A stretch of 64,000 bases of DNA from Epithemia pelagica. Its lineage: Eukaryota > Protista > Bacillariophyta. A program made the translations under genes and the position numbers. Of this stretch, positions 53,411 to 64,000 are shown piece by piece. Where the stretch lies: contig OX337229.1 of the NCBI GenBank assembly GCA_946965045.2, forward strand, positions 1,612,001 to 1,676,000. The letters are read 5' to 3'. The notes beneath the pieces were generated by a model. It had not been told where the DNA came from. It saw only the letters and a program-made list of their open reading frames with translations, and made no database searches. Positions within the stretch are counted from its first letter, which is position 1; each line of letters opens with the position of its first letter.

Positions 53411-53412
53411 TA

Positions 53413-54006
53413 AGGGCTGGGTAAGCCGATCCATGTTCGGCTAAGTAGGCTCAGTACATTAAGCTACGTAGTACTATTTTCATCACTGTAACAAGTGGGG
53501 CGAATGGTCACAAATCGAAAACTTGCTGCCACGAGAAACAATGCAATCCGGAAACCATCACTCGACAATGGTCGAAGAAATCACCCCCATGGCAATAACT
53601 TCATGGATAATTGAGCCTAACTGAATCACTTTTAGAATAATACTCTTGAATACTAGAGCAACTATGGTTTCAATTTGATTCAGTCACCGTTGAGAAATGA
53701 ATGAGTTAGGAAGGTTTTTGGATTACATCACCAGTATACCTTTTGATCCAACGCGACAAATCTTCTGTAGCTGCAGAACACAGTAATACTAGCAAACTCA
53801 AATAACTTACAGTAGTAGGATGTTGATGCGATGCATCGGTAAATGCATGCGGCATCAACGGATCTCGCCGTCATCGTGGAGTGTTTTTGCATTTTTTCGG
53901 ACTTCCCACCATTTCAGGTATGACGTGTACTATGGGATTTTATGTACGCTACGTAGCTTTTGTACTGAACCTACTTAGCCGAACATGGATCGGCTTACCC
54001 AGCCCT
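53413..54006. mobile_element. MITE (594 bp), superfamily unassigned
   Basis: About 59-bp TIRs AGGGCTGGGTAAGCCGATCCATGTTCGGCTAAGTAGG... at 53413-53471 and 53949-54006; first 37 bp perfect; TA flanks; no ORF. Confidence 0.88.
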
Positions 54007-54645
54007 TAGTAAACTTACAAGCTGAGTTCAGACAGAATGTTCCTGACGTAGCGCTCCAGTAGGAAATCTACGTAATCCGCGCGAGCCATCCCCTTAATAT
54101 AGCCCTTCTATTTATGCCTCTACCGTTCTACCAAAAATTGACCATGGTGAACGGTCCTTTTGACCGATCTCTTGCCAAATAGGAGACGGCTCCATGATCC
54201 CATGCTCTGAACCTCTTCTCCATTCATGGGTTGAGCATGGAGAACGATGTCGGCGCTGCATTCGTTTTGTAGGTGTCGTTTTATCTAGTTGAAGGTGGTC
54301 GCCGCGCGATTTACTACGGCGACTCACGGCAAAACTTGGTGCAACCAATGCACCTCTATTGTAGAATCGAATGATAGAAGATAGAACAAAGACTATGAAC
54401 ACTTGTAGCGTTGTTCACGTCAAAAATTGATATTCTTCTCGTTAGATATATGGAACTTAGACTAGAAGTTGCGTCGTTCACAACAAAGATTGATGTTCTT
54501 TTCTTTGTTGTGACTCACACAGCCGTACCTGAACGCAATGTATTGTACGGTAAACGTAACACAACTATAGAATTAGATCGTATTCATAGAGAATGAAGAT
54601 CCTACTCAAATGATAATCATAAAACGCTGCTACATTGTTCACTAT

Positions 54646-55218
54646 CTAGGCTTGTTGATGATTAAAGAAGAGATTTTGAAGCGGGTGCTTGAGCATCATC
54701 GCACCAAGCGAAATGTTGAAGCGATCCATATCCTTGCTGCCCATGTAGATTGTAACGACCTGGGGTTCCATGCAGGCTTTAGGGTTGATGGAGCAGCGTG
54801 TGTAGAGGCGGATGCGTCCCATGGGAGGTCCGTTCTTGCTCGTCTTTCCAGAGACCTGGTCCAGGTGCGACAGAGCAATGAACCCAACTGGAACAACCAA
54901 CGCTGGTTCCTCATGCTCGCTTGTTGCATCCCGGTCAAAGACTGCAATCCGTAGGTAGTCGGTCGCAAGCTCCCGCTGCACAAGCAGATGGCCACGGTCG
55001 ACGATGTTGTGGCCAGTGTCCTTGTTTCTCGACATGGGCCCGATGAGCGCGCAAACATCGCTGGCATAAAAGCACGACTTGAACGGGAGACCAGCACCAC
55101 CCTCACGGCCATCCTCTTCGTTGAACTCGAACTTCGTCCTCATGTTGGTCATCTTGTTTCTTCTTCCTTGCCTCTTCCTGTCGTCTCTGTTTGATTGTTC
55201 CATTGCACGGCGGGTCAT
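54646..55218 (-). CDS. Cargo orphan protein, 190 aa
   Basis: ATG-to-stop ORF with globular-looking composition, divergent from the 55390 gene across 171 bp; no family recognised. Confidence 0.55.
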   Translation of the reverse strand: MTRRAMEQSNRDDRKRQGRRNKMTNMRTKFEFNEEDGREGGAGLPFKSCFYASDVCALIGPMSRNKDTGHNIVDRGHLLVQRELATDYLRIAVFDRDATSEHEEPALVVPVGFIALSHLDQVSGKTSKNGPPMGRIRLYTRCSINPKACMEPQVVTIYMGSKDMDRFNISLGAMMLKHPLQNLFFNHQQA

Positions 55219-55389
55219 TCGGAAGTTGCTTCATGCTGCAAGTTGATTTTGTGGCGCGCGCCGATATTGTTCACGAATGAGCGCGGGGGGATTCCCTAGA
55301 TGACACAAGAACGGAGAGCGGGCAACAATCAAACAAACAAACACAACAATCAAACGAACGAATCCCTATTGTGTTCTCACTTTCCAACG

Positions 55390-56296
55390 ATGCGCCAGAC
55401 GCGTAGTGCTACCAAACGAGCTGAGTCTGCGAAGAAGGAGCAGGAGGACTCCGCCGCAGCTCCCTCCACAACCGCATTTCCCTCCGACAAGGGAAACAAG
55501 GGAAACAAGGCAAACAAGAAAATGAAGACAAAGACGGCCGTGGACAACAAAACGTCGAAGAAGAAGAAGACGACGACGACGAAGTGTCCCGCTTCGACAA
55601 AGAAGCATGTGACCTTCAACCTTGAGGGTCCTTCGTCGTGGCACGAGCGCGCAAAACAGTGGCAACTCACCATTGGGGATGAAGATGGTATCCCAGTGTT
55701 CTTCGTCAGCAACAAGGACGTCGAATGCGCTAACCTGTCGGATATCGCGGCAGAGCTCCTTGCGATCGAGGCTGTCGGCAAAGAAGGTAAGTTTGATTGT
55801 TCATTGTTGGTTTTGAGTCTCCCTTTCTCACGACGCGCCCTCTGCTGCCACAGACACCAAACCCAACAGCAAGCCCGACAACAAGCCCGACAGCAAGCCC
55901 GAGAAGGAGATCAAGAAGGAGGACGACGTCGAGAACAAGACTCCAGAGTCTTATGTGACCCCGAAGAAAGTAACTTCTTCCCCGAAGGTGGCGTCTCGAG
56001 CTTTCGCACTGACCCCCTCCCAGAAGCATGCTTTCCAGCGTCGGATTGCTGAGGAACAGGTGAAGGAAAGTGGAGCGACAGACCCTCGCCAGACTTTGAA
56101 TGAGTCGCTGGCATTGGGAGAAAACATCCCGTCGTCTCCTCCTTTGTTCTTTAGCAATCCTTCCCGTGCATACCGGACATCCATTGATTCGTATGCCGAT
56201 GATGGATTTCTCGAGACCCAAGAAGACTTCATCGGTACGCAGCAAAACGGGCTTTTTGGTCCCGATTACTTGGATCATGAGGACGAGGCGTACTAG
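55390..56296 (+). CDS. Cargo orphan protein, 279 aa, basic N-terminus and acidic C-terminus, 2 exons (55390-55786, 55854-56296)
   Basis: Intron 55787-55853 (GTAAGT...CAG, 67 nt) joins ORF 55300-56052 in frame to ORF 55955-56296. Confidence 0.7.
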
Positions 56297-56822
56297 ATAT
56301 CTACTGATGGACGTTTTAGGTATCCTTAATCACTAAATATGAATCGATTTGTCATCATGGTACTTGTAGTGCTTCTACAGTCGTTCTTGTTGTGATTATC
56401 ATTATTGTCGTCGTCCAAGTCCTCGTCATTGTCGTGGCTATCATTGTCGTCGTTGTATTGTAGTCGTCCTTGTTGTAGCTATCATCGCTCATCCCGTTTG
56501 TCCTCTTCATCATCGTTATGGTCGTGATTGTCATGGTCATCATCATCGTCATCGTCGTCATCCAGCTTCCCAGTGTCGGCAGTTGGGTCCCGGTTTGCGG
56601 GCGCGTCTCGTATGGATGTACGAGGGAGTTCGTGATTGGTCCCAGACGAGCTATGATTCTTATCTCATATTTTGCGTTTTCGACACTTCATGGAAACAAA
56701 CACGACAATGTACTAAAGTATAATATGAAGGAATAAACTAATAAATCTTAATGTCATACTGCAACTCAACGTACCATGGTATTCTTTTTCAACAATAACA
56801 CACTTTCACCACGAGGAAAGAT

Positions 56823-59672
56823 CTAAGTTTGATCGGCTTCTTTGCTCGCGATCTTCTTACCAGGTTTATAATTCGCGGCCACAAGCACCTTACGAGGATT
56901 GTCACTTAGGACGCAAACACGCTTGTCCCCGACCCAAAGCTTAACCCCAACGAGCCCACTTCGGCGAACACCAGGGATGTCTTTGTCATGGAAGTAGTAG
57001 TCGGAAAGCCTGCTTTCTCCAGAAGGAAGGTTGTAGGTGTTCTTTGGCATGGGATCGTGAACGGTCCCATCTTTTCCTTGGTACACGTAGAAATGTGCAC
57101 GTGGATTCCCCATCTCCCCAGTCTTAAAGCCACCAGCATGGACAGTATCTCCTCGAACGAGGAGAAACGTGCCATATGGGATATGTACCACTTTACCCAG
57201 CTCGTTCATATAATCCTTGTGCTTCTCACCGCGGAAACTCCACAATTCAACGGACATACCCTCCTCCGCCAGGGGCATGAAAACAATAAAAGGCATGCGT
57301 TCCCGGAGTGGCAGATCTGCATTCGCTCTCCGAGTCTTTTTGATTGGTTGCTTCCCGGAGGGCGTTTTGGGACCTTCGGACATGTTCCCTGTTACGCTCT
57401 GGAACAAGAAGTCGATGTGAGGTTCTTGAACTTTTGCCTCTGTGGTCTTCATGAACGAAAGGTGAATGTTGATTTGGTCCGCAAATGAATCATCTTTTGC
57501 GTAGTTCATCCCATAGAGAGCTGAGGCAAGCAGCTGCTTGAAATTGGCCGTGACCTTTGCAGCATGTTCGGGGTTAACGTGGCCGAAGTACCGAATGTTG
57601 GACACCATTCCCTCATGTTCCATCATTGCCATCAACAAATTTGGTGTGTAGTCTTGAACAGATTTGAAAAATTTGCCCTTTCCTTTCTGGTCCAAGCCTG
57701 TGCTGTGCCACGCATTCTCCAACATTTCGAGGAGATCTGGCGGAGTTGTCAAAAAATATCCTCGATACATTTTGTTTTCAATATCGTAAAGCCATTTGAA
57801 ATACTTCGAGCGCAATTCTCTATGTAACAACTTCATTTTCTCGAAACGCTCATTCTCCTTCGCTTTCGCATCGATCGCTTCCATCTCCTCAAAAATACTA
57901 TCCGTGTCATCTTCTGCCATTACCACTGGTACGAACATTCCAGTACTAGGGCTGGGATTGGCTTGAGTGGCGGGTTGAGCTTGTGCTGCAGGTAGGACGG
58001 GACTGCTGGGAAGGAGCACGGGTTGAGCTTGTGCTGCAGGTGGGATGGGATTGCTCGGAAGGAGGTGGGGTGAGCCTTCGACCGGCTGGGTCGTGCGTTG
58101 TTGTTGCTGCTGATGATTGAGCGATGAAGGTAGAGTCCCCCCGTAACCTCCATAGTTGGGTTGATTGTAGGACGGAGGATGTCCATGGTACTGCGGCGGA
58201 GGATGACTCGTCGGAGGATGAGGATAATGCGGCGGAGGATAAGGATAATGCGGCGGAGGATGATGATTGTACTGCGGCGGAGGGTAATTGTACTGCGGCG
58301 GAGGATAATTGTACTGCGGCGGAGGATGGTGATAATATTGCGGAGGATAATGCGGCGGCAGCTGAGGGGGCGAATTGTAGTGCTCAGAAACGTATTGCGG
58401 AGGAGGCGGAGAAGGAGGACGAGCAACAGTAGCAACTGGACGGAAAACAGTAGAAGGAGAAGTTAAGACAGGCTTCTTTGTTTTTTTCCCGTCGTCTTCA
58501 TTTTCATCACTGGGTCGACCGCGTTTCTTTCCCTCGTTTTCGTCGTCGTCACCTTTCGTCGACGGTCGGATAACCTGTTCGGAGGACGTCGGCGATTCGT
58601 CCGTAAGGTTATAAAACAAAGACAGCTCGTCGCCCGGCTCAATATTTTTGATTGCCTTAACTAGAAGATTCGGCATGATTCTCACGTTGTAACCGTCGTC
58701 CGATTCATCCGGTGGATTGTCTGTACCGTACAGATGGTGTTGGTGGTCGTTGATTAAGTGCAGCCCCATGCCGAAGTGATCGTCGTTGTCTGCTTGAAGC
58801 CTTCGATTGTCACGTCCGAACTGAATCGCGTACTCGTTGGGTACAACTGTCCGAGACGTGACGTCGTTTCCCGTGTACGCACCAATCACTTCACCATCTT
58901 TGATTGTCCGAACTGCAAAAACGCCAAACCCGGCGCCTGGGAGTTTTGACTCCTTCACCTCAAACAGAAGCATTTTTCCAAGGTAGATCTTGACTACCGG
59001 ATTGTTCGCAAATGTGTAACCGACATGCTTGCCGATCGGGAAGGTATGTTTTCTGTTCTTCTTGACAGGGAGACCCATTCCACTCGAAAGTGGCACAATC
59101 TTCCCCTTTAGCAAGCCAGAACCGGGCTTCCGAATTGGAGCTTCTTGGACCGAAAAAGTGGCCGAAATCTTCCGTGAGACATACTCTCCCATAGCACAGG
59201 CAAGTACAGCACTGTCTTTGATCTTGGAGAGCGTCTTGAGGCCTTCGGTGAAAGTCCTGATTGGATCCCGTCCAGAACGAGAAGGGAGTTTCTCCACTTC
59301 CTCGATGCCTTTCTTGTAGTCCTCTGTGCGCGTATCGATGAGGAGCTGCCGCATTTGAGTTTCCGAATACTGTTTGCTGTGGTCCTTCTCTGGATGGCCA
59401 CGCCGAACATCTGCAAGCTTTTTATCCTTCACTTCGGCAAAGTCTTGATCCGAAAGAAACCGATGGTGCTTTGTTGTTGTCGCTTCGTCTGTTGCTGCTG
59501 CTTCGGGTGCTGCGGCTGCTGCTGCTTCGGGCGCCGCTGCTGCTTTGGCTGACTGCTCTTCCGCTGCATCTATTGCAAGTATAAGAGCGTCAAGATTTCC
59601 TTTGTCACTCATGCTGTCTCGTTTTTGAGCGCCTGCTTTTGAATACTGTTTCTTAGGGCTTGGTTTCCCCAT
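56823..59672 (-). CDS. Cargo protein, 949 aa: SET domain + Pro/Tyr/His-rich linker + 2OG-Fe(II) dioxygenase domain
   Basis: SET motifs VKESKLPGAGFGVFA, GEVIGAYTG, HLIND, AIKNIEPGDELSLFYN (about 58958-58608); dioxygenase motifs QEPHID (H at 57417-19), GDTVHAGG (H at 57138-40), NPRAHFYV (R at 57099-101). Confidence 0.8.
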   Translation of the reverse strand: MGKPSPKKQYSKAGAQKRDSMSDKGNLDALILAIDAAEEQSAKAAAAPEAAAAAAPEAAATDEATTTKHHRFLSDQDFAEVKDKKLADVRRGHPEKDHSKQYSETQMRQLLIDTRTEDYKKGIEEVEKLPSRSGRDPIRTFTEGLKTLSKIKDSAVLACAMGEYVSRKISATFSVQEAPIRKPGSGLLKGKIVPLSSGMGLPVKKNRKHTFPIGKHVGYTFANNPVVKIYLGKMLLFEVKESKLPGAGFGVFAVRTIKDGEVIGAYTGNDVTSRTVVPNEYAIQFGRDNRRLQADNDDHFGMGLHLINDHQHHLYGTDNPPDESDDGYNVRIMPNLLVKAIKNIEPGDELSLFYNLTDESPTSSEQVIRPSTKGDDDENEGKKRGRPSDENEDDGKKTKKPVLTSPSTVFRPVATVARPPSPPPPQYVSEHYNSPPQLPPHYPPQYYHHPPPQYNYPPPQYNYPPPQYNHHPPPHYPYPPPHYPHPPTSHPPPQYHGHPPSYNQPNYGGYGGTLPSSLNHQQQQQRTTQPVEGSPHLLPSNPIPPAAQAQPVLLPSSPVLPAAQAQPATQANPSPSTGMFVPVVMAEDDTDSIFEEMEAIDAKAKENERFEKMKLLHRELRSKYFKWLYDIENKMYRGYFLTTPPDLLEMLENAWHSTGLDQKGKGKFFKSVQDYTPNLLMAMMEHEGMVSNIRYFGHVNPEHAAKVTANFKQLLASALYGMNYAKDDSFADQINIHLSFMKTTEAKVQEPHIDFLFQSVTGNMSEGPKTPSGKQPIKKTRRANADLPLRERMPFIVFMPLAEEGMSVELWSFRGEKHKDYMNELGKVVHIPYGTFLLVRGDTVHAGGFKTGEMGNPRAHFYVYQGKDGTVHDPMPKNTYNLPSGESRLSDYYFHDKDIPGVRRSGLVGVKLWVGDKRVCVLSDNPRKVLVAANYKPGKKIASKEADQT
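58140..58410 (-). repeat. Coding minisatellite, ~21-bp units encoding PPPQYNY/PPPHYP
   Basis: Repeated GGCGGAGG...TGTACTGC units on the + strand. Confidence 0.85.
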
Positions 59673-60083
59673 GGTCGAAACGCAAAAACTCGAAACACGA
59701 AACACAAGAAACACGAAACGCAGCATTCTCCTCAGCCCTCAGCCCACATTCCAAAAAAAAATCTTGAGCTCACATACTAAAAAACGGTGAAGTTTTGGTA
59801 TGTGGGCTGAGTTACTTAAGGATTTGCGTGCCAGTTTTGCGATGCGTGCGCGTTTTCGGAGAGGGAGGCGTGTTTCGCGCGAGGTCTGCTCCGAAAATCG
59901 TCCATTTTCTCGCTCTCTCACATTTTCGAGGTACTTACAAACTGATAATCCAACACGCAACACGAGCACGCAACACGGAAGTGATCATTGATACCAATAA
60001 CTGACAAGAAATACATTCAATAAAATGGATTGCTGTTATAAATAGTTAAGTTACATGCATTTTGATGATAAATGGAGATTAGA

Positions 60084-63000
60084 TCAGGTTTCTACTGCAC
60101 CAGATCCTTGCGTTTCTCTCCAGAGACGTGAGATGAAGCCATGATCTTGGTCGAAGGCGGATCGGTGACACTTGATTGCTTTTGACATCTTTTCAATTTC
60201 GGCATACGAGAGGCCCGCAGCTGCATAGTCGCTGTTGTTGGAATTTTGATCGTATAACAAGTACGCGAGCATATAGCGACGTGCCTTTGCTGACATTTTC
60301 CGCATGATTTCGGGTGTTGTTTTCTTCAGGCTCGCTGTCAAACATCGTAAAAAGGCAGCTTTGTCTTTCTTCTCATTCAGTGAGAAAGCACGAAAGACTT
60401 TTTTTGAGTAACCCCAGCCATACTCGATCCCCTCACCGGCCATTTCACAGTGATACTTGGTCGATACGAGAATCTCGATCCTGCAACGATGTCGTTCAGA
60501 CAAGTCTTCCGCCAGCTTCTCCATTGCAGATTTTTCGTTCTTGAAATCGGAGCATTCGCTCATCAGATGAACCATAGAGTACTTTTTGTAGTCCGCCTGA
60601 TAGGCTTCTTTCACAGTCTTCTTATCCGCTTCCAACCATGCATCTCTGGTTGTCTTGACGTACTTGATCATGTTGTTAGGGTCTATCCACCCCCGCTCCC
60701 ATAACACTTGAAAGAGCCCTTTTGCATTATTCATCCAGCCTTCCTCGATCACATCATCTTCAATCACCGTTGCAATGTTGGAGCGTTTACAAAGGTCCTG
60801 TAGTTCACCAGCATTTTTCGATTGAAATGAACGTTGCATTCCAGGTCCCATGACCCGGACAAGTTTTGCCATGAGCTCCTTCTTTGTGAGGTTGCGCTTT
60901 TTCTTTCTACCAGTTCGGTGTGTATTCTTCGATGCGACACGCTGCGCGTCATTGAGACGATGGCCTTTTTTAGCAACTGGACCACGATCGTTCTCCTGAT
61001 AGACGAGGTGTTGTACGTCACCAACTCGTAGTTTGTCGTCATGGTTGTACGGGCCAAGGCAAGCTTGATCAATAATTTGTGTGTCCCGCATGCTGGGAAC
61101 AGCTCCTCCCCAGTCGTTATTCATGTTCAGAGCATTTAACCCATCGGATTGTTGTTTTCCATGACCACTGCTTTGGTCGAACAAAAAGACAAAGTCATGG
61201 GCGGGGAACATGACCACGAGGCAATCGACAATATCCTCCAACTGCAAGGCCATGTATTCATAATTCCAATATCCCTCTTTATCTGCTCCGTATTCAAAAA
61301 AGCGAGTGAACGGTTGGGCATTGGTAATTGGAGTCTTGGCAGTGTGACCATTGAGGTTCACTGCAGCCTCGGTAGAGACGTATTTGTTGTGTGTCGCATG
61401 TAGACGGAGTTCATTAATCCGAAATAGACTCGCAGCAAGCAACGGGTTTCCGTTCATAAGGAAGCCCCATGATCGGCTTACAAAAGCGCTGATCATCATC
61501 CCATGTCCATCATCCTTTGGCAGCATTTTAGTTGCGCCATCTTTAGTGTACCATGCCTTAGACGAGAAGGAAAACTGCTTGTAGATCGATTCGTCCTGGC
61601 CGATGAGGATGACAGGTTTGCGGTCGGAGGGAAACCTGTGTGACAAGTTTCCATTGTGAATTGTGTTTTCTGGTTTGATGTACCGTTCAAATTCGCTTGG
61701 GAAGGCATCAACATGGTACTCCCGCATCTGCTTGCCTGTTGTTACATCAGTGTACTCAAATACAAAGCTGTTTGGCAAGAGCTTCTCCTTGCCCGCATTC
61801 CCTTCGTTTTCAAGTTTGATTGCATCCTCGGTAGGGAGCTGCACCCACCGATACGACAGCTCTTCCCACTTAAAGTACTTCTTGACAAAAGCAGCTCTGT
61901 GGGCAACATTCTCAGCATTTTCGTGTCGATCAGTGAAGTATGTTTTCGTGTGTTCCTTGAACACGAGCCCTGCAGCAGCAATACATCGCCACGCTGTGCT
62001 TTGCGAAATGGTGGAAAGCTTCATCGATGCCAAGAAGGCCTCGTACGATACTGGCGTTGCATTCGTATCCATGCACTCTTGTACGATCATGGTATGCATA
62101 TCCGGAAGCAATGTTGTCCTCAGGTACATTAGAGCAGACTCTGTTGTAAGAGTGCTCAGGTTTTCCTTTGCCCAGCATTCAAACTTTACCTTTGCTTCAG
62201 GTATGTGAACGAATAAGACGGGCGATGGCTCTTTCCCAATATGAACGTGGTAGTTGGGATGAGGGAAACTGTCGTTTTCCCGAAAGTACCTGTGAAAACG
62301 AGCAATGGTCTTGGGATGTTTTTTTACTTTTTCACCATAAATCTGTTCCATTTTGCTTATGGCTTCGCTTATGCAGTTCAGCCATGTACGACCGTGTGGC
62401 ATATCAAGCAACGCTATCTTATAAGAAAGTTGTAAATACGTTGCCTTGAGCAGTACCCTCTGTTGCTGTTCCTGGTTGGGGGGGAAGATGTCTCCCTTGT
62501 TAACCACATTCGGAAGTGCCTCCACGTTGGAAATGGCCCTTTCAAGGGTTTCTATCCATCGCTCAAGATTTCGTTTTGACGATCCTGGAGAATCGCATTT
62601 GCCGGCAAAGAGCCTACGGTTCCTTGGCTCATCAAAACAGGCGCTTTCCATTTGTTGCGATAGACCTTGGATCATCTCACTCTCGAAAACTGAAAAACCA
62701 ATCGGCAAACTCTGTGGATGGTCATGGCCGATTTCGTCTGTGGCCAATTCAGGATGTTGGATTGCTCCAACAAGCACCTGATTTGTGTTGTCGTGAGGTG
62801 GTGACGTTTGCATTTCGGTAGGGCTGTCTCCAATTTGTGGCGGTTGACCATGTTGCTGCGTTGCAGTGCTCTTCATTGCTGGTGGTGTTGTAGTGTTTCT
62901 TGCTTGCTTGGATACAGTTGCCGTGCCTTCATGTACCCCTGGTGAGTCTTCGTTCCTTCGCTTCGTTGGCTTCTCTCGTCCCGACCGCCGAATCACATTC

Positions 63001-63350
63001 TCGGCTGCAGCCTCCAGCCATTCTTGGTGATCGTTCAACATCACTGGCAGTTTTGTTGTGTCGGAGCTTATATACAAGAATGTGTATCTTTGTTTATTGA
63101 TTGTGATTTTGTGGCGGTACCAGCCAAACTTGTTTGGTTCCGACACCTCATTTTCGAAAATGGGTTTAAGGACAATGTCTCTAGAGAAAAGAGAATTCAA
63201 TCTGATTGTCGACAGTCCTGGCAACCAAGTTCTCAGGTATCCTACAATCTCGGTGTCTTGGATCCACTTGTTGCAGAATCCGAACGAGGATCGGGTGCAT
63301 CGCGTCTTAAAGACGTCAAGAATATCTTTCCCAGAAAAATTTCGTTCCAT
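60084..63350 (-). CDS. Large DDE transposase (1088 aa), IS630/Tc1/mariner-like, D138D250E
   Basis: GQDES (D at 61593-95), FLFDQSSGH (D at 61176-78), KYHCEMAGEGIEYGWG (E at 60423-25); upstream HTH-like ISQSTAWR and YFTDRHE motifs; uninterrupted ORF. Confidence 0.88.
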   Translation of the reverse strand: MERNFSGKDILDVFKTRCTRSSFGFCNKWIQDTEIVGYLRTWLPGLSTIRLNSLFSRDIVLKPIFENEVSEPNKFGWYRHKITINKQRYTFLYISSDTTKLPVMLNDHQEWLEAAAENVIRRSGREKPTKRRNEDSPGVHEGTATVSKQARNTTTPPAMKSTATQQHGQPPQIGDSPTEMQTSPPHDNTNQVLVGAIQHPELATDEIGHDHPQSLPIGFSVFESEMIQGLSQQMESACFDEPRNRRLFAGKCDSPGSSKRNLERWIETLERAISNVEALPNVVNKGDIFPPNQEQQQRVLLKATYLQLSYKIALLDMPHGRTWLNCISEAISKMEQIYGEKVKKHPKTIARFHRYFRENDSFPHPNYHVHIGKEPSPVLFVHIPEAKVKFECWAKENLSTLTTESALMYLRTTLLPDMHTMIVQECMDTNATPVSYEAFLASMKLSTISQSTAWRCIAAAGLVFKEHTKTYFTDRHENAENVAHRAAFVKKYFKWEELSYRWVQLPTEDAIKLENEGNAGKEKLLPNSFVFEYTDVTTGKQMREYHVDAFPSEFERYIKPENTIHNGNLSHRFPSDRKPVILIGQDESIYKQFSFSSKAWYTKDGATKMLPKDDGHGMMISAFVSRSWGFLMNGNPLLAASLFRINELRLHATHNKYVSTEAAVNLNGHTAKTPITNAQPFTRFFEYGADKEGYWNYEYMALQLEDIVDCLVVMFPAHDFVFLFDQSSGHGKQQSDGLNALNMNNDWGGAVPSMRDTQIIDQACLGPYNHDDKLRVGDVQHLVYQENDRGPVAKKGHRLNDAQRVASKNTHRTGRKKKRNLTKKELMAKLVRVMGPGMQRSFQSKNAGELQDLCKRSNIATVIEDDVIEEGWMNNAKGLFQVLWERGWIDPNNMIKYVKTTRDAWLEADKKTVKEAYQADYKKYSMVHLMSECSDFKNEKSAMEKLAEDLSERHRCRIEILVSTKYHCEMAGEGIEYGWGYSKKVFRAFSLNEKKDKAAFLRCLTASLKKTTPEIMRKMSAKARRYMLAYLLYDQNSNNSDYAAAGLSYAEIEKMSKAIKCHRSAFDQDHGFISRLWRETQGSGAVET

Positions 63351-64000
63351 CCTGTTGTAGACCGTGTTGCGTGGGATGAGTTGGATGATCGAATTATTGA
63401 GGATGATGCCAACCGTTTGAGATGTTGCCCCATTTGGGGTGGTTCAAGTAAACCCTAAAGCATCCGGATGCAGCTCGGCAACATCTCGAACGGTTGGGAT
63501 GGCCCTCCACCATGGTCGTTAGACAACAACCGTTTTTTCATCATTTTCGACGGAATTCTAGCGTTCGGAAGCTGTCACACATCACGGTACGAAACAAAAA
63601 ATTTATTATTCAGACACTGGGTTGTCACGAGTCGGACACTTTCATTCACTAGTCAGGCCAAACGCTATTGAGGATTATATTTTATGGTACTAAATCTACG
63701 AGGGGTCTACGTCAGGAACATACTCCCTGAACTCAGCTTGTACTCCCTATCAAGCTGTGTAGGTAGTGAGAAATTCCTGGAAGCCATGTCACAAAGTGTC
63801 ACACAAGTGTCACACACGAGAGGGAAACCGCGCGACTCTCACGAAACTACTTCCCGGTCGTACAAAAAATTCCTACTGTAGTATAAAAATGTGAGACGAA
63901 CTACCTACACAGTCTGGTATGGAGTTAGTAGAAAGCTATGAGTAGTAGAGGAGTAGAGGAGTTCTACGTTCTCTACTGCTCCGTTTTGTGGAAAGAGCTG

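Follow-up and report, generated by a model that had tools for sequence, protein, structure and literature searches.

What does an enzyme do that joins a SET domain and a 2-oxoglutarate/Fe(II) (2OG/Fe(II)) dioxygenase in a single chain, and whom does it serve? The question is raised by a gene of the diatom Epithemia pelagica, which lies in a stretch of 64,000 nucleotides (assembly GCA_946965045.2, contig OX337229.1, positions 1,612,001 to 1,676,000 of the forward strand) that we refer to as the window and whose first letter is position 1 in what follows. An earlier note on this DNA had read the gene as a possible writer plus eraser of chromatin marks. Our analysis identifies the gene as cargo of a recently active Tc1/mariner-like transposon, the class of the transposase being assigned through a distant homologue and a protein language model. 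This context had escaped the earlier reading, and with it the likely beneficiary of the protein changes.

The reading frame and its transposon

The open reading frame (ORF) occupies positions 56823-59726 on the minus strand and encodes a SET-linker-dioxygenase protein of 967 amino acids. A run of 967 codons without a stop would arise by chance with a probability of about 7e-21 under uniform codon use. Position 59672, taken as the upper end of the gene in the earlier note, is a second ATG (M19) that gene callers had chosen as the start and that gives a 949-residue form. The claim that the motifs of both domains share one ORF holds for the whole open frame, in which each of the six motifs behind it occurs exactly once. 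Three of these belong to the SET domain, namely GAGFGVFA (residues 264-271, positions 58914-58937), HLIND (residues 323-327, 58746-58760) and ELSLFYN (residues 367-373, 58608-58628); the other three belong to the dioxygenase, namely PHID (residues 769-772, 57411-57422), VHAGG (residues 862-866, 57129-57143) and NPRAHFY (residues 874-880, 57087-57107).

The gene sits inside a unit of 9,727 bp (54016-63742) with the dinucleotide TA at both ends. Five further copies of this unit are present in the same assembly, 99.8-99.9% identical to it, and their homology to the window starts and stops exactly at the two borders. Each of the six copies has TA at its two ends, beyond which the flanks are unrelated. 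The unit ends in terminal inverted repeats: the 47-nucleotide arm at the low-coordinate end (54016-54062) is 83% complementary to that at the high-coordinate end (63696-63742), where the end sequence does not differ among the six copies. The mobility of the unit is also apparent from one variant of the fusion protein (P0152), which is encoded at five other loci: the order of genes inside the unit is constant there, while the genes around it differ entirely.

Next to the fusion gene lies an ORF of 1088 amino acids (60084-63350, minus strand), the transposase of a giant, diatom-wide family. While it has no Pfam match itself, we found 90 homologues of about 600-1,100 amino acids, many of which sit in multi-member clusters and several of which are named as hypothetical proteins of Fragilaria crotonensis. 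One of the 90, a distant homologue, carries the Pfam domain DDE_3 (PF13358), and the protein-language-model neighbours of the transposase are DDE_3 clusters of the Tc1/mariner type. Taken together, the exact borders at 54016 and 63742, the unrelated flanks, the inverted repeats and the transposase identify the SET-dioxygenase gene as the cargo of a transposon. Clustering at 90% identity groups nine distinct full-length variants of the fusion protein (948-970 amino acids) with truncated ones; a second cluster holds 19 SET-only fragments of about 404 amino acids, the examined member of which (L012) ends after residue 372.

The two domains and the linker

The SET domain (58602-58964, minus strand; residues approximately 255-375) resembles those of the PR/SET type. 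The Pfam profile PF00856 covers residues 266-373 (profile positions 1-105) with a score of 26.7 bits in the whole protein, or 28.9 bits in its N-terminal piece alone, above the gathering cut-off of 22.4 bits. The cysteine-rich pre-SET and post-SET regions are absent around it, in agreement with the earlier description of a minimal SET domain. Its best solved relatives are the PR domains of MECOM/PRDM3, PRDM16 and PRDM12, through weak and local matches (E 0.0006-0.3). Like these PRDM proteins, the window protein has a minimal SET domain without the flanking cysteine clusters; in contrast to them it has no zinc fingers, and its 'IND' motif and C-terminal ELSLFYN are set apart by an acidic insert, PPDESDDGYN. 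Among the 100 nearest protein-language-model clusters of the SET part, 96 are SET clusters, with scores of up to 0.97, and the nearest of these are small SET proteins of haptophytes and giant viruses (143-170 amino acids). The best PDB matches of one profile (A3) were designed Kelch repeats (SAKe); we rejected these as a composition artefact, made up of many repeats of 3-5 bits over the acidic insert.

A GxG motif near the N-terminal end of SET domains binds S-adenosylmethionine, and their RFINHSC motif usually contains an 'NH' pair. The first of these motifs is present in the window protein, where GAGFG (residues 264-268) aligns with PGAGLG of the MECOM and PRDM16 PR domains; in the distant SET protein of a sister subfamily (L016, described below) only the second glycine is kept. 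The second motif reads LIND, with Asn326 kept and the histidine replaced by Asp327. The same 'ND' pair is seen in an old remnant of the element (L007, as FIND; 50% identity) and in L016 (as FAND; 30% identity), and its retention across this divergence marks it as a trait of the lineage and not as decay. Tyr372, the sixth position counted from the glutamate of ELSLFY, is kept in L016 as ELFWCY and may, by analogy, be the catalytic tyrosine of the C-terminal ELxF/YDY motif.

The two domains are separated by a low-complexity linker (57840-58571, minus strand; residues 386-629) with PPPQY-type repeats. It is predicted to be disordered over its approximately 245 residues and is rich in proline, glutamine and tyrosine, with 22% proline over residues 386-640. 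At the DNA level it contains 21/42-nucleotide and 48-nucleotide tandem repeats, and G strongly exceeds C on the plus strand. An AT-hook-like KKRGRP stands at the start of the linker (residues 400-405, 58512-58529), followed by a basic stretch, GKKTKKP. We did not use this motif as evidence: RGRP occurs in close copies (L008, L014) and was not found in the scanned stretches of L006 and L013.

The dioxygenase domain (56952-57839, minus strand; residues approximately 630-925) belongs to an orphan family. Residues 601-967 have no match in the Pfam, PHROGs and NCBIfam profile libraries, while an exhaustive HMMER search of 1.84 billion cluster representatives recovered 241 relatives at E<=0.001, 63 of these at E<=1e-10. 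Nine residues are invariant in a 44-sequence alignment of the family: Gln767, His770, Asp772, Pro818, Trp829, Asp860, His863, Gly865 and His878. These include the HxD pair of the iron-binding triad (His770 and Asp772, in PHID at 57411-57422) and the distal histidine, His863, in the stretch VHAGG...NPRAHFY (57087-57143). Arg876 lies 13 residues after His863 and is conserved in at least 90% of the aligned relatives; its spacing and conservation make it the putative basic residue for the C5 carboxylate of 2-oxoglutarate. The same conserved core is shared by 78 more distant relatives; across 79 sequences at this greater distance, His770, Asp772 and His863 are each retained in at least 90%. In a comparison of the family profile with PDB sequences, VHAGG...PR aligns with VVHAGG...PR of FtmOx1 (chain residues 203-218), so that His863 falls on residue 205 and Arg876 on residue 218 with a spacing of 13 residues in both; at E 0.15 this match is below the threshold and counts as support only when taken together with the fold.

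The AlphaFold2 model of this domain, built from the 44-sequence alignment, is confident (pLDDT 83, pTM 0.81), and a Foldseek comparison with the PDB gave 371 chains at E<=0.001, the best 50 of which are all 2OG/Fe(II) oxygenases. A search of 48,161 chains made independently of Foldseek likewise returned only 2OG/Fe(II)-type double-stranded beta-helix (DSBH) proteins among its best 50. With VIA-align, AsqJ, OkaE, AndA, FtmOx1, SnoN and KanJ superpose at Z ~12 (up to 12.3) over ~195 residues at 3.5 A. TM-scores relative to the model are below 0.5; the model also shows additional helical structure at its N-terminal side and ~25 inserted residues that are disordered. The best match among AFDB clusters is K0S6F9, a 'Fe2OG dioxygenase domain-containing' protein (E 6e-15). 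Thus the structure check that had been suggested for this half of the protein, AlphaFold followed by Foldseek, placed it in the DSBH fold, and the proposed HxD...H...R triad is conserved; on the strength of the model and the alignment we consider the predicted fold and the cofactor-binding residues established.

The structural neighbours say less about the substrate. In the Foldseek-independent search the Z-scores descend from 12.2 for PhyH-type small-molecule enzymes, through 11.6-10.8 for prolyl hydroxylases, to 10.3-9.2 for AlkB homologues, thymine hydroxylase and FTO. AsqJ, FtmOx1, AndA, KanJ, the P4H of P. putida and PHD2 share the DSBH core of the window enzyme over ~175-200 residues at ~3.5 A (Z 11-12), but the PhyH-type enzymes and prolyl hydroxylases are only 9-14% identical to it and show no profile-level match. 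PhyH clusters appear in Atlas searches with the oxygenase, and PhyH-type structures are its nearest (Z ~12), though the PhyH profile PF05721 is unmatched by the query and by 121 of its relatives. The model suggests that the oxygenase works like a PhyH without placing it in that family.

These comparisons bear directly on the reading of the protein as a true writer-eraser pair, in which the SET domain would methylate a histone lysine and the oxygenase would demethylate methyl-lysine or oxidize methylated DNA bases. Part of this reading stands, in that a SET domain and a 2OG/Fe(II) domain are fused in frame, each keeping plausible catalytic residues and the latter a complete HxD...H...R set; moreover, the structural matches include AlkB-type and FTO chains (Z 9-10), and some distant AFDB relatives of the oxygenase model are named C2H2-type zinc-finger proteins (E ~5e-8 to 1e-6, 11-17% identity). 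It is the eraser half that lacks support. No profile identifies the oxygenase as JmjC, TET/JBP or AlkB. JmjC chains are missing from the best 50 matches of each structural search and JmjC Pfam families from the matches at E<=10; TET/JBP chains are likewise missing from these sets of 50, and no TET/JBP Pfam family matches. The AlkB-type chains rank below the PhyH-type enzymes and prolyl hydroxylases, which are the best structural neighbours, and in other organisms members of the family are accompanied by neither SET nor another chromatin domain. We therefore regard a true writer-eraser pair as improbable. As the oxygenase is not JmjC-like, it is more likely to hydroxylate a protein or another macromolecule than to demethylate lysine.

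The same structural neighbours could point to a metabolic enzyme, with an oxygenase that oxidizes a metabolite, or that hydroxylates trimethyl-lysine, whether free or within a protein, after the SET domain has produced it. Its best structural matches are indeed natural-product oxygenases (AsqJ, OkaE, AndA, FtmOx1, SnoN and KanJ, at Z ~12), but the gradient of Z is shallow, with prolyl hydroxylases already at 11.6, and such a role sits uneasily with an enzyme that is fused to a PR/SET domain and carried by a multi-copy transposon. Known trimethyl-lysine hydroxylases belong to the TauD family, and TauD-type similarity does not stand out among the matches; for this reason, and because the gene is borne on a transposon, a carnitine-type pathway of lysine methylation followed by trimethyl-lysine hydroxylation ranks low. 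A metabolic role of either kind appears to us a poor prospect.

Diverged elements and the origin of the fusion

Three diverged elements of the same genome carry both parts of the cargo. L008 is 93% identical to the window element in its transposase, 93% in the SET domain and 75% in the oxygenase, which is called there as a separate ORF. L006 has a transposase of 56% identity, a SET domain of 84% and an oxygenase of 73%, with changes of reading frame among its linker matches. L007 is an old remnant in which no transposase was found; its SET (50%) and oxygenase (42%) halves are adjacent and in the same frame, with stops between them. Farther removed is the sister subfamily L016, the transposase of which is 38% identical and the cargo of which is a SET-only protein of 408 amino acids with an acidic tail where the linker and oxygenase would be. 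This SET protein passes the Pfam SET profile on its own (25.7 bits against 22.4) and, at 30% identity, shares the motifs MGLHxxND, YNV and ELxxxYN with the window protein. A relative in Fragilaria crotonensis (L017) has the transposase, and no SET or oxygenase match lies within 8 kb on either side of it.

The oxygenase has its own distribution. None of 121 scanned relatives outside this genome carries a SET domain, and Pfam domains of any kind are almost absent from them; the single Med26/TFIIS-N and single CTNNBL domains that were found are too few to infer a function. So far the family has been seen only in microbial eukaryotes; its members include a named protein of the diatom Epithemia and two MMETSP transcripts. 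One relative, P0007, for which tblastn gives 34% identity, has the setting of an ordinary gene in a housekeeping region, with selenophosphate-synthetase-like, TPR, WD40 and phosphoglycerate kinase genes as neighbours and an identical neighbourhood in three environmental samples. Searches for homologues of the whole protein (full-length, region 600-967, and N-terminal, residues 1-400) gave only copies from the same assembly, and no fused SET-oxygenase relative from elsewhere is on record in sequences within the length limits of the search. In a maximum-likelihood tree of the oxygenase family, the root of which is arbitrary, the transposon-borne copies form one clade (support 100/99) that joins L007 (98/63) and is nested within the family.

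The SET-only cargo of L016, the transposase-only L017 and the SET-free relatives of the oxygenase together point to the transposon lineage as the most likely place of origin of the fusion. On the simplest reading, SET would be the older cargo of this group of transposons, and a host-type oxygenase gene would have become fused behind it once, in one lineage.

Divergence along the elements is mosaic. In L008 the SET domain is 93% and the oxygenase 75% identical, with accessory ORFs at 99%, and in L006 a transposase of 56% identity accompanies a SET domain of 84%. Synonymous change (pS) is also uneven along the gene, as recombination between copies would produce; the two patterns suggest recombination or exchange of cargo between element subfamilies.

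The accessory ORFs lie toward the low-coordinate end of the element. That of 250 amino acids (55300-56052, plus strand) is 98.8% identical in L008 and 38% in L006 and has no significant Pfam match. That of 190 amino acids (54646-55218, minus strand), also without a Pfam match, is 99.5% identical in L008, 60.5% in L006 and 43% in L016; conservation across these three diverged subfamilies makes it probable that the element encodes a genuine third protein here.

Function, known systems and genomic surroundings

The anatomy and evolution of the element, as described above, we regard as highly probable. The explanation that we favour overall, and judge reasonably probable, is that the transposon carries as cargo a SET and 2OG/Fe(II) enzyme that acts for the element in the nucleus. 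That this function is directed at chromatin and serves the element is a more tentative proposal, quite possible and still somewhat short of probable. In this model the element would make the protein, the nuclear targets of which may be histones, other chromatin or DNA-repair proteins, or the transposition machinery. The SET domain would methylate lysine, and the oxygenase would hydroxylate, or less likely demethylate, a protein or nucleic-acid substrate. The element would benefit either by resisting silencing, for which the SET-bearing HarbingerS and MuDR elements and the TET/JBP-bearing transposons of fungi offer parallels, or by receiving help with integration and repair, such as the repair of breaks at sites of excision and insertion, where SETMAR is the parallel. 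It is also conceivable, given the prolyl hydroxylases among the structural neighbours of the model, that the oxygenase hydroxylates the proline-rich linker of its own protein.

A more specific version of this proposal is a bifunctional transposon enzyme, in which the SET domain lays down a lysine-methyl mark and the oxygenase removes or hydroxylates a silencing mark on histones or DNA. We consider this distinctly unlikely; were it true, it would represent a new class of epigenetic oxygenase that is neither JmjC nor TET, and a new anti-silencing strategy of diatom DNA transposons.

The substitution pattern of the cargo is consistent with purifying selection on both domains. Relative to the old remnant L007, the ratio of nonsynonymous to synonymous divergence (dN/dS) is 0.18 for the SET domain and 0.30 for the oxygenase, values that are rough since dS between the two is ~2 and saturated. 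Among the intact variants L013-L015, the ratio pN/pS is 0.18-0.48 in the SET domain, 0-0.27 in the oxygenase and, where synonymous changes allow comparison, 0.8-2.7 in the N-terminal region and linker. Residues that differ between variants are concentrated ahead of residue 540. These data also address the alternative that the gene is a functionless passenger, consisting of pieces of host genes carried as in Pack-MULEs, of no benefit to the element and intact because its copies are young. Copies that are 99.8-99.9% identical have had little time to decay, many others are truncated or frameshifted, and pairwise dN/dS among near copies is 0.4-0.9, all of which a passenger would explain. However, SET and 2OG/Fe(II) domains are still paired in a copy with as little as 42-50% amino-acid identity, where dN/dS is 0.18-0.30, a SET cargo is kept in a subfamily with a transposase of only 38% identity, residues of catalytic type are conserved, and the changes among intact variants avoid both domains and accumulate in the N-terminus and linker. 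We thus think a passenger unlikely, and favour cargo that acts for the element.

Several points weigh against the favoured reading. The counts behind the pN/pS values are small, and the window copy is common to all comparisons. pS itself varies more than ten-fold along the gene among intact copies, and young transposon copies look conserved whether or not their cargo matters; the truncated and frameshifted copies count here as well. The TA seen in six copies is a putative target-site duplication and could instead belong to the repeat. In the SET domain the change from histidine to Asp327 makes activity uncertain, and the AlphaFold2 model, from an alignment of five sequences, is unusable (pLDDT 33.7). 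The nearest structures of the oxygenase are small-molecule enzymes, and Z falls off too gradually to single out a class of substrate. Finally, the three sequencing runs that contain the region are genomic, as indicated by Logan contigs of up to 509 kb, and so give no splicing or transcript ends; a search of RNA libraries listed none that contain it. A scan for bacterial promoters and terminators was set aside as irrelevant to a eukaryotic host.

To our knowledge, few cases of transposons with chromatin enzymes of their own are known: the SET genes of oomycete Harbinger and MuDR elements, the TET/JBP genes of fungal elements and VANC of Arabidopsis. The control of transposons in diatoms is itself little understood. 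SET genes are carried by the HarbingerS and MuDR families of DNA transposons in Phytophthora (Kojima and Jurka 2014, cited in PMC12730594). Like the window element, these are stramenopile DNA transposons with a SET gene beside the transposase, presumed to act on host chromatin marks, a likeness that is one of description. The window element differs in being flanked by TA and Tc1/mariner-like, in the size of its family transposase (~1,000-1,100 amino acids) and in the fusion of SET to a 2OG/Fe(II) dioxygenase. DNA transposons of fungi encode TET/JBP dioxygenases (reviewed in PMC12730594) and thus share with the window element a 2OG/Fe(II) dioxygenase as cargo, one that is proposed to counter epigenetic silencing; by Pfam and the best 50 structural matches, however, the window dioxygenase is not TET/JBP, and it is fused to SET. 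In primates, SETMAR/Metnase is a SET gene fused to the Hsmar1 mariner transposase, with reported links to H3K36 methylation and DNA-break repair (PMC2847698, PMC2566874). Both systems associate SET with a mariner-type transposase, but SETMAR is a host gene, domesticated and present in one copy, that joins SET to the transposase itself, whereas in the window SET belongs to a separate ORF of a mobile, multi-copy element.

Word searches of the open-access literature found neither a SET-oxygenase fusion nor a diatom transposon with such cargo. DNA transposons that carry an epigenetic enzyme are known as a kind; new in this case are the transposon superfamily, its host group, the fusion of two enzymes and the orphan family to which the oxygenase belongs. 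The element adds a third transposon superfamily, diatoms as a new host group and a two-enzyme architecture, and it exposes a 2OG/Fe(II) oxygenase family of at least 241 cluster representatives outside Pfam, NCBIfam and PHROGs. Its recently active appearance, its many intact copies and its natural SET-only and transposase-only relatives provide a comparison series for the value of the cargo to the transposon.

The element seems to lie between two small repeat units. On the low-coordinate side, a pair of 48-nucleotide inverted repeats, 98% complementary and 502 nucleotides apart, delimits a MITE-like unit of ~600 bp (53411-54008) that stops 8 bp short of the transposon. On the other side, a pair of 26-nucleotide inverted repeats, 85% complementary and 132 nucleotides apart, begins at the last base of the transposon (63742-63925). 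Elsewhere in the genome, some copies (L013, L012) adjoin or are interrupted by ORFs of Copia-type (RVT_2) retrotransposons, indicating nested insertions in repeat-rich regions.

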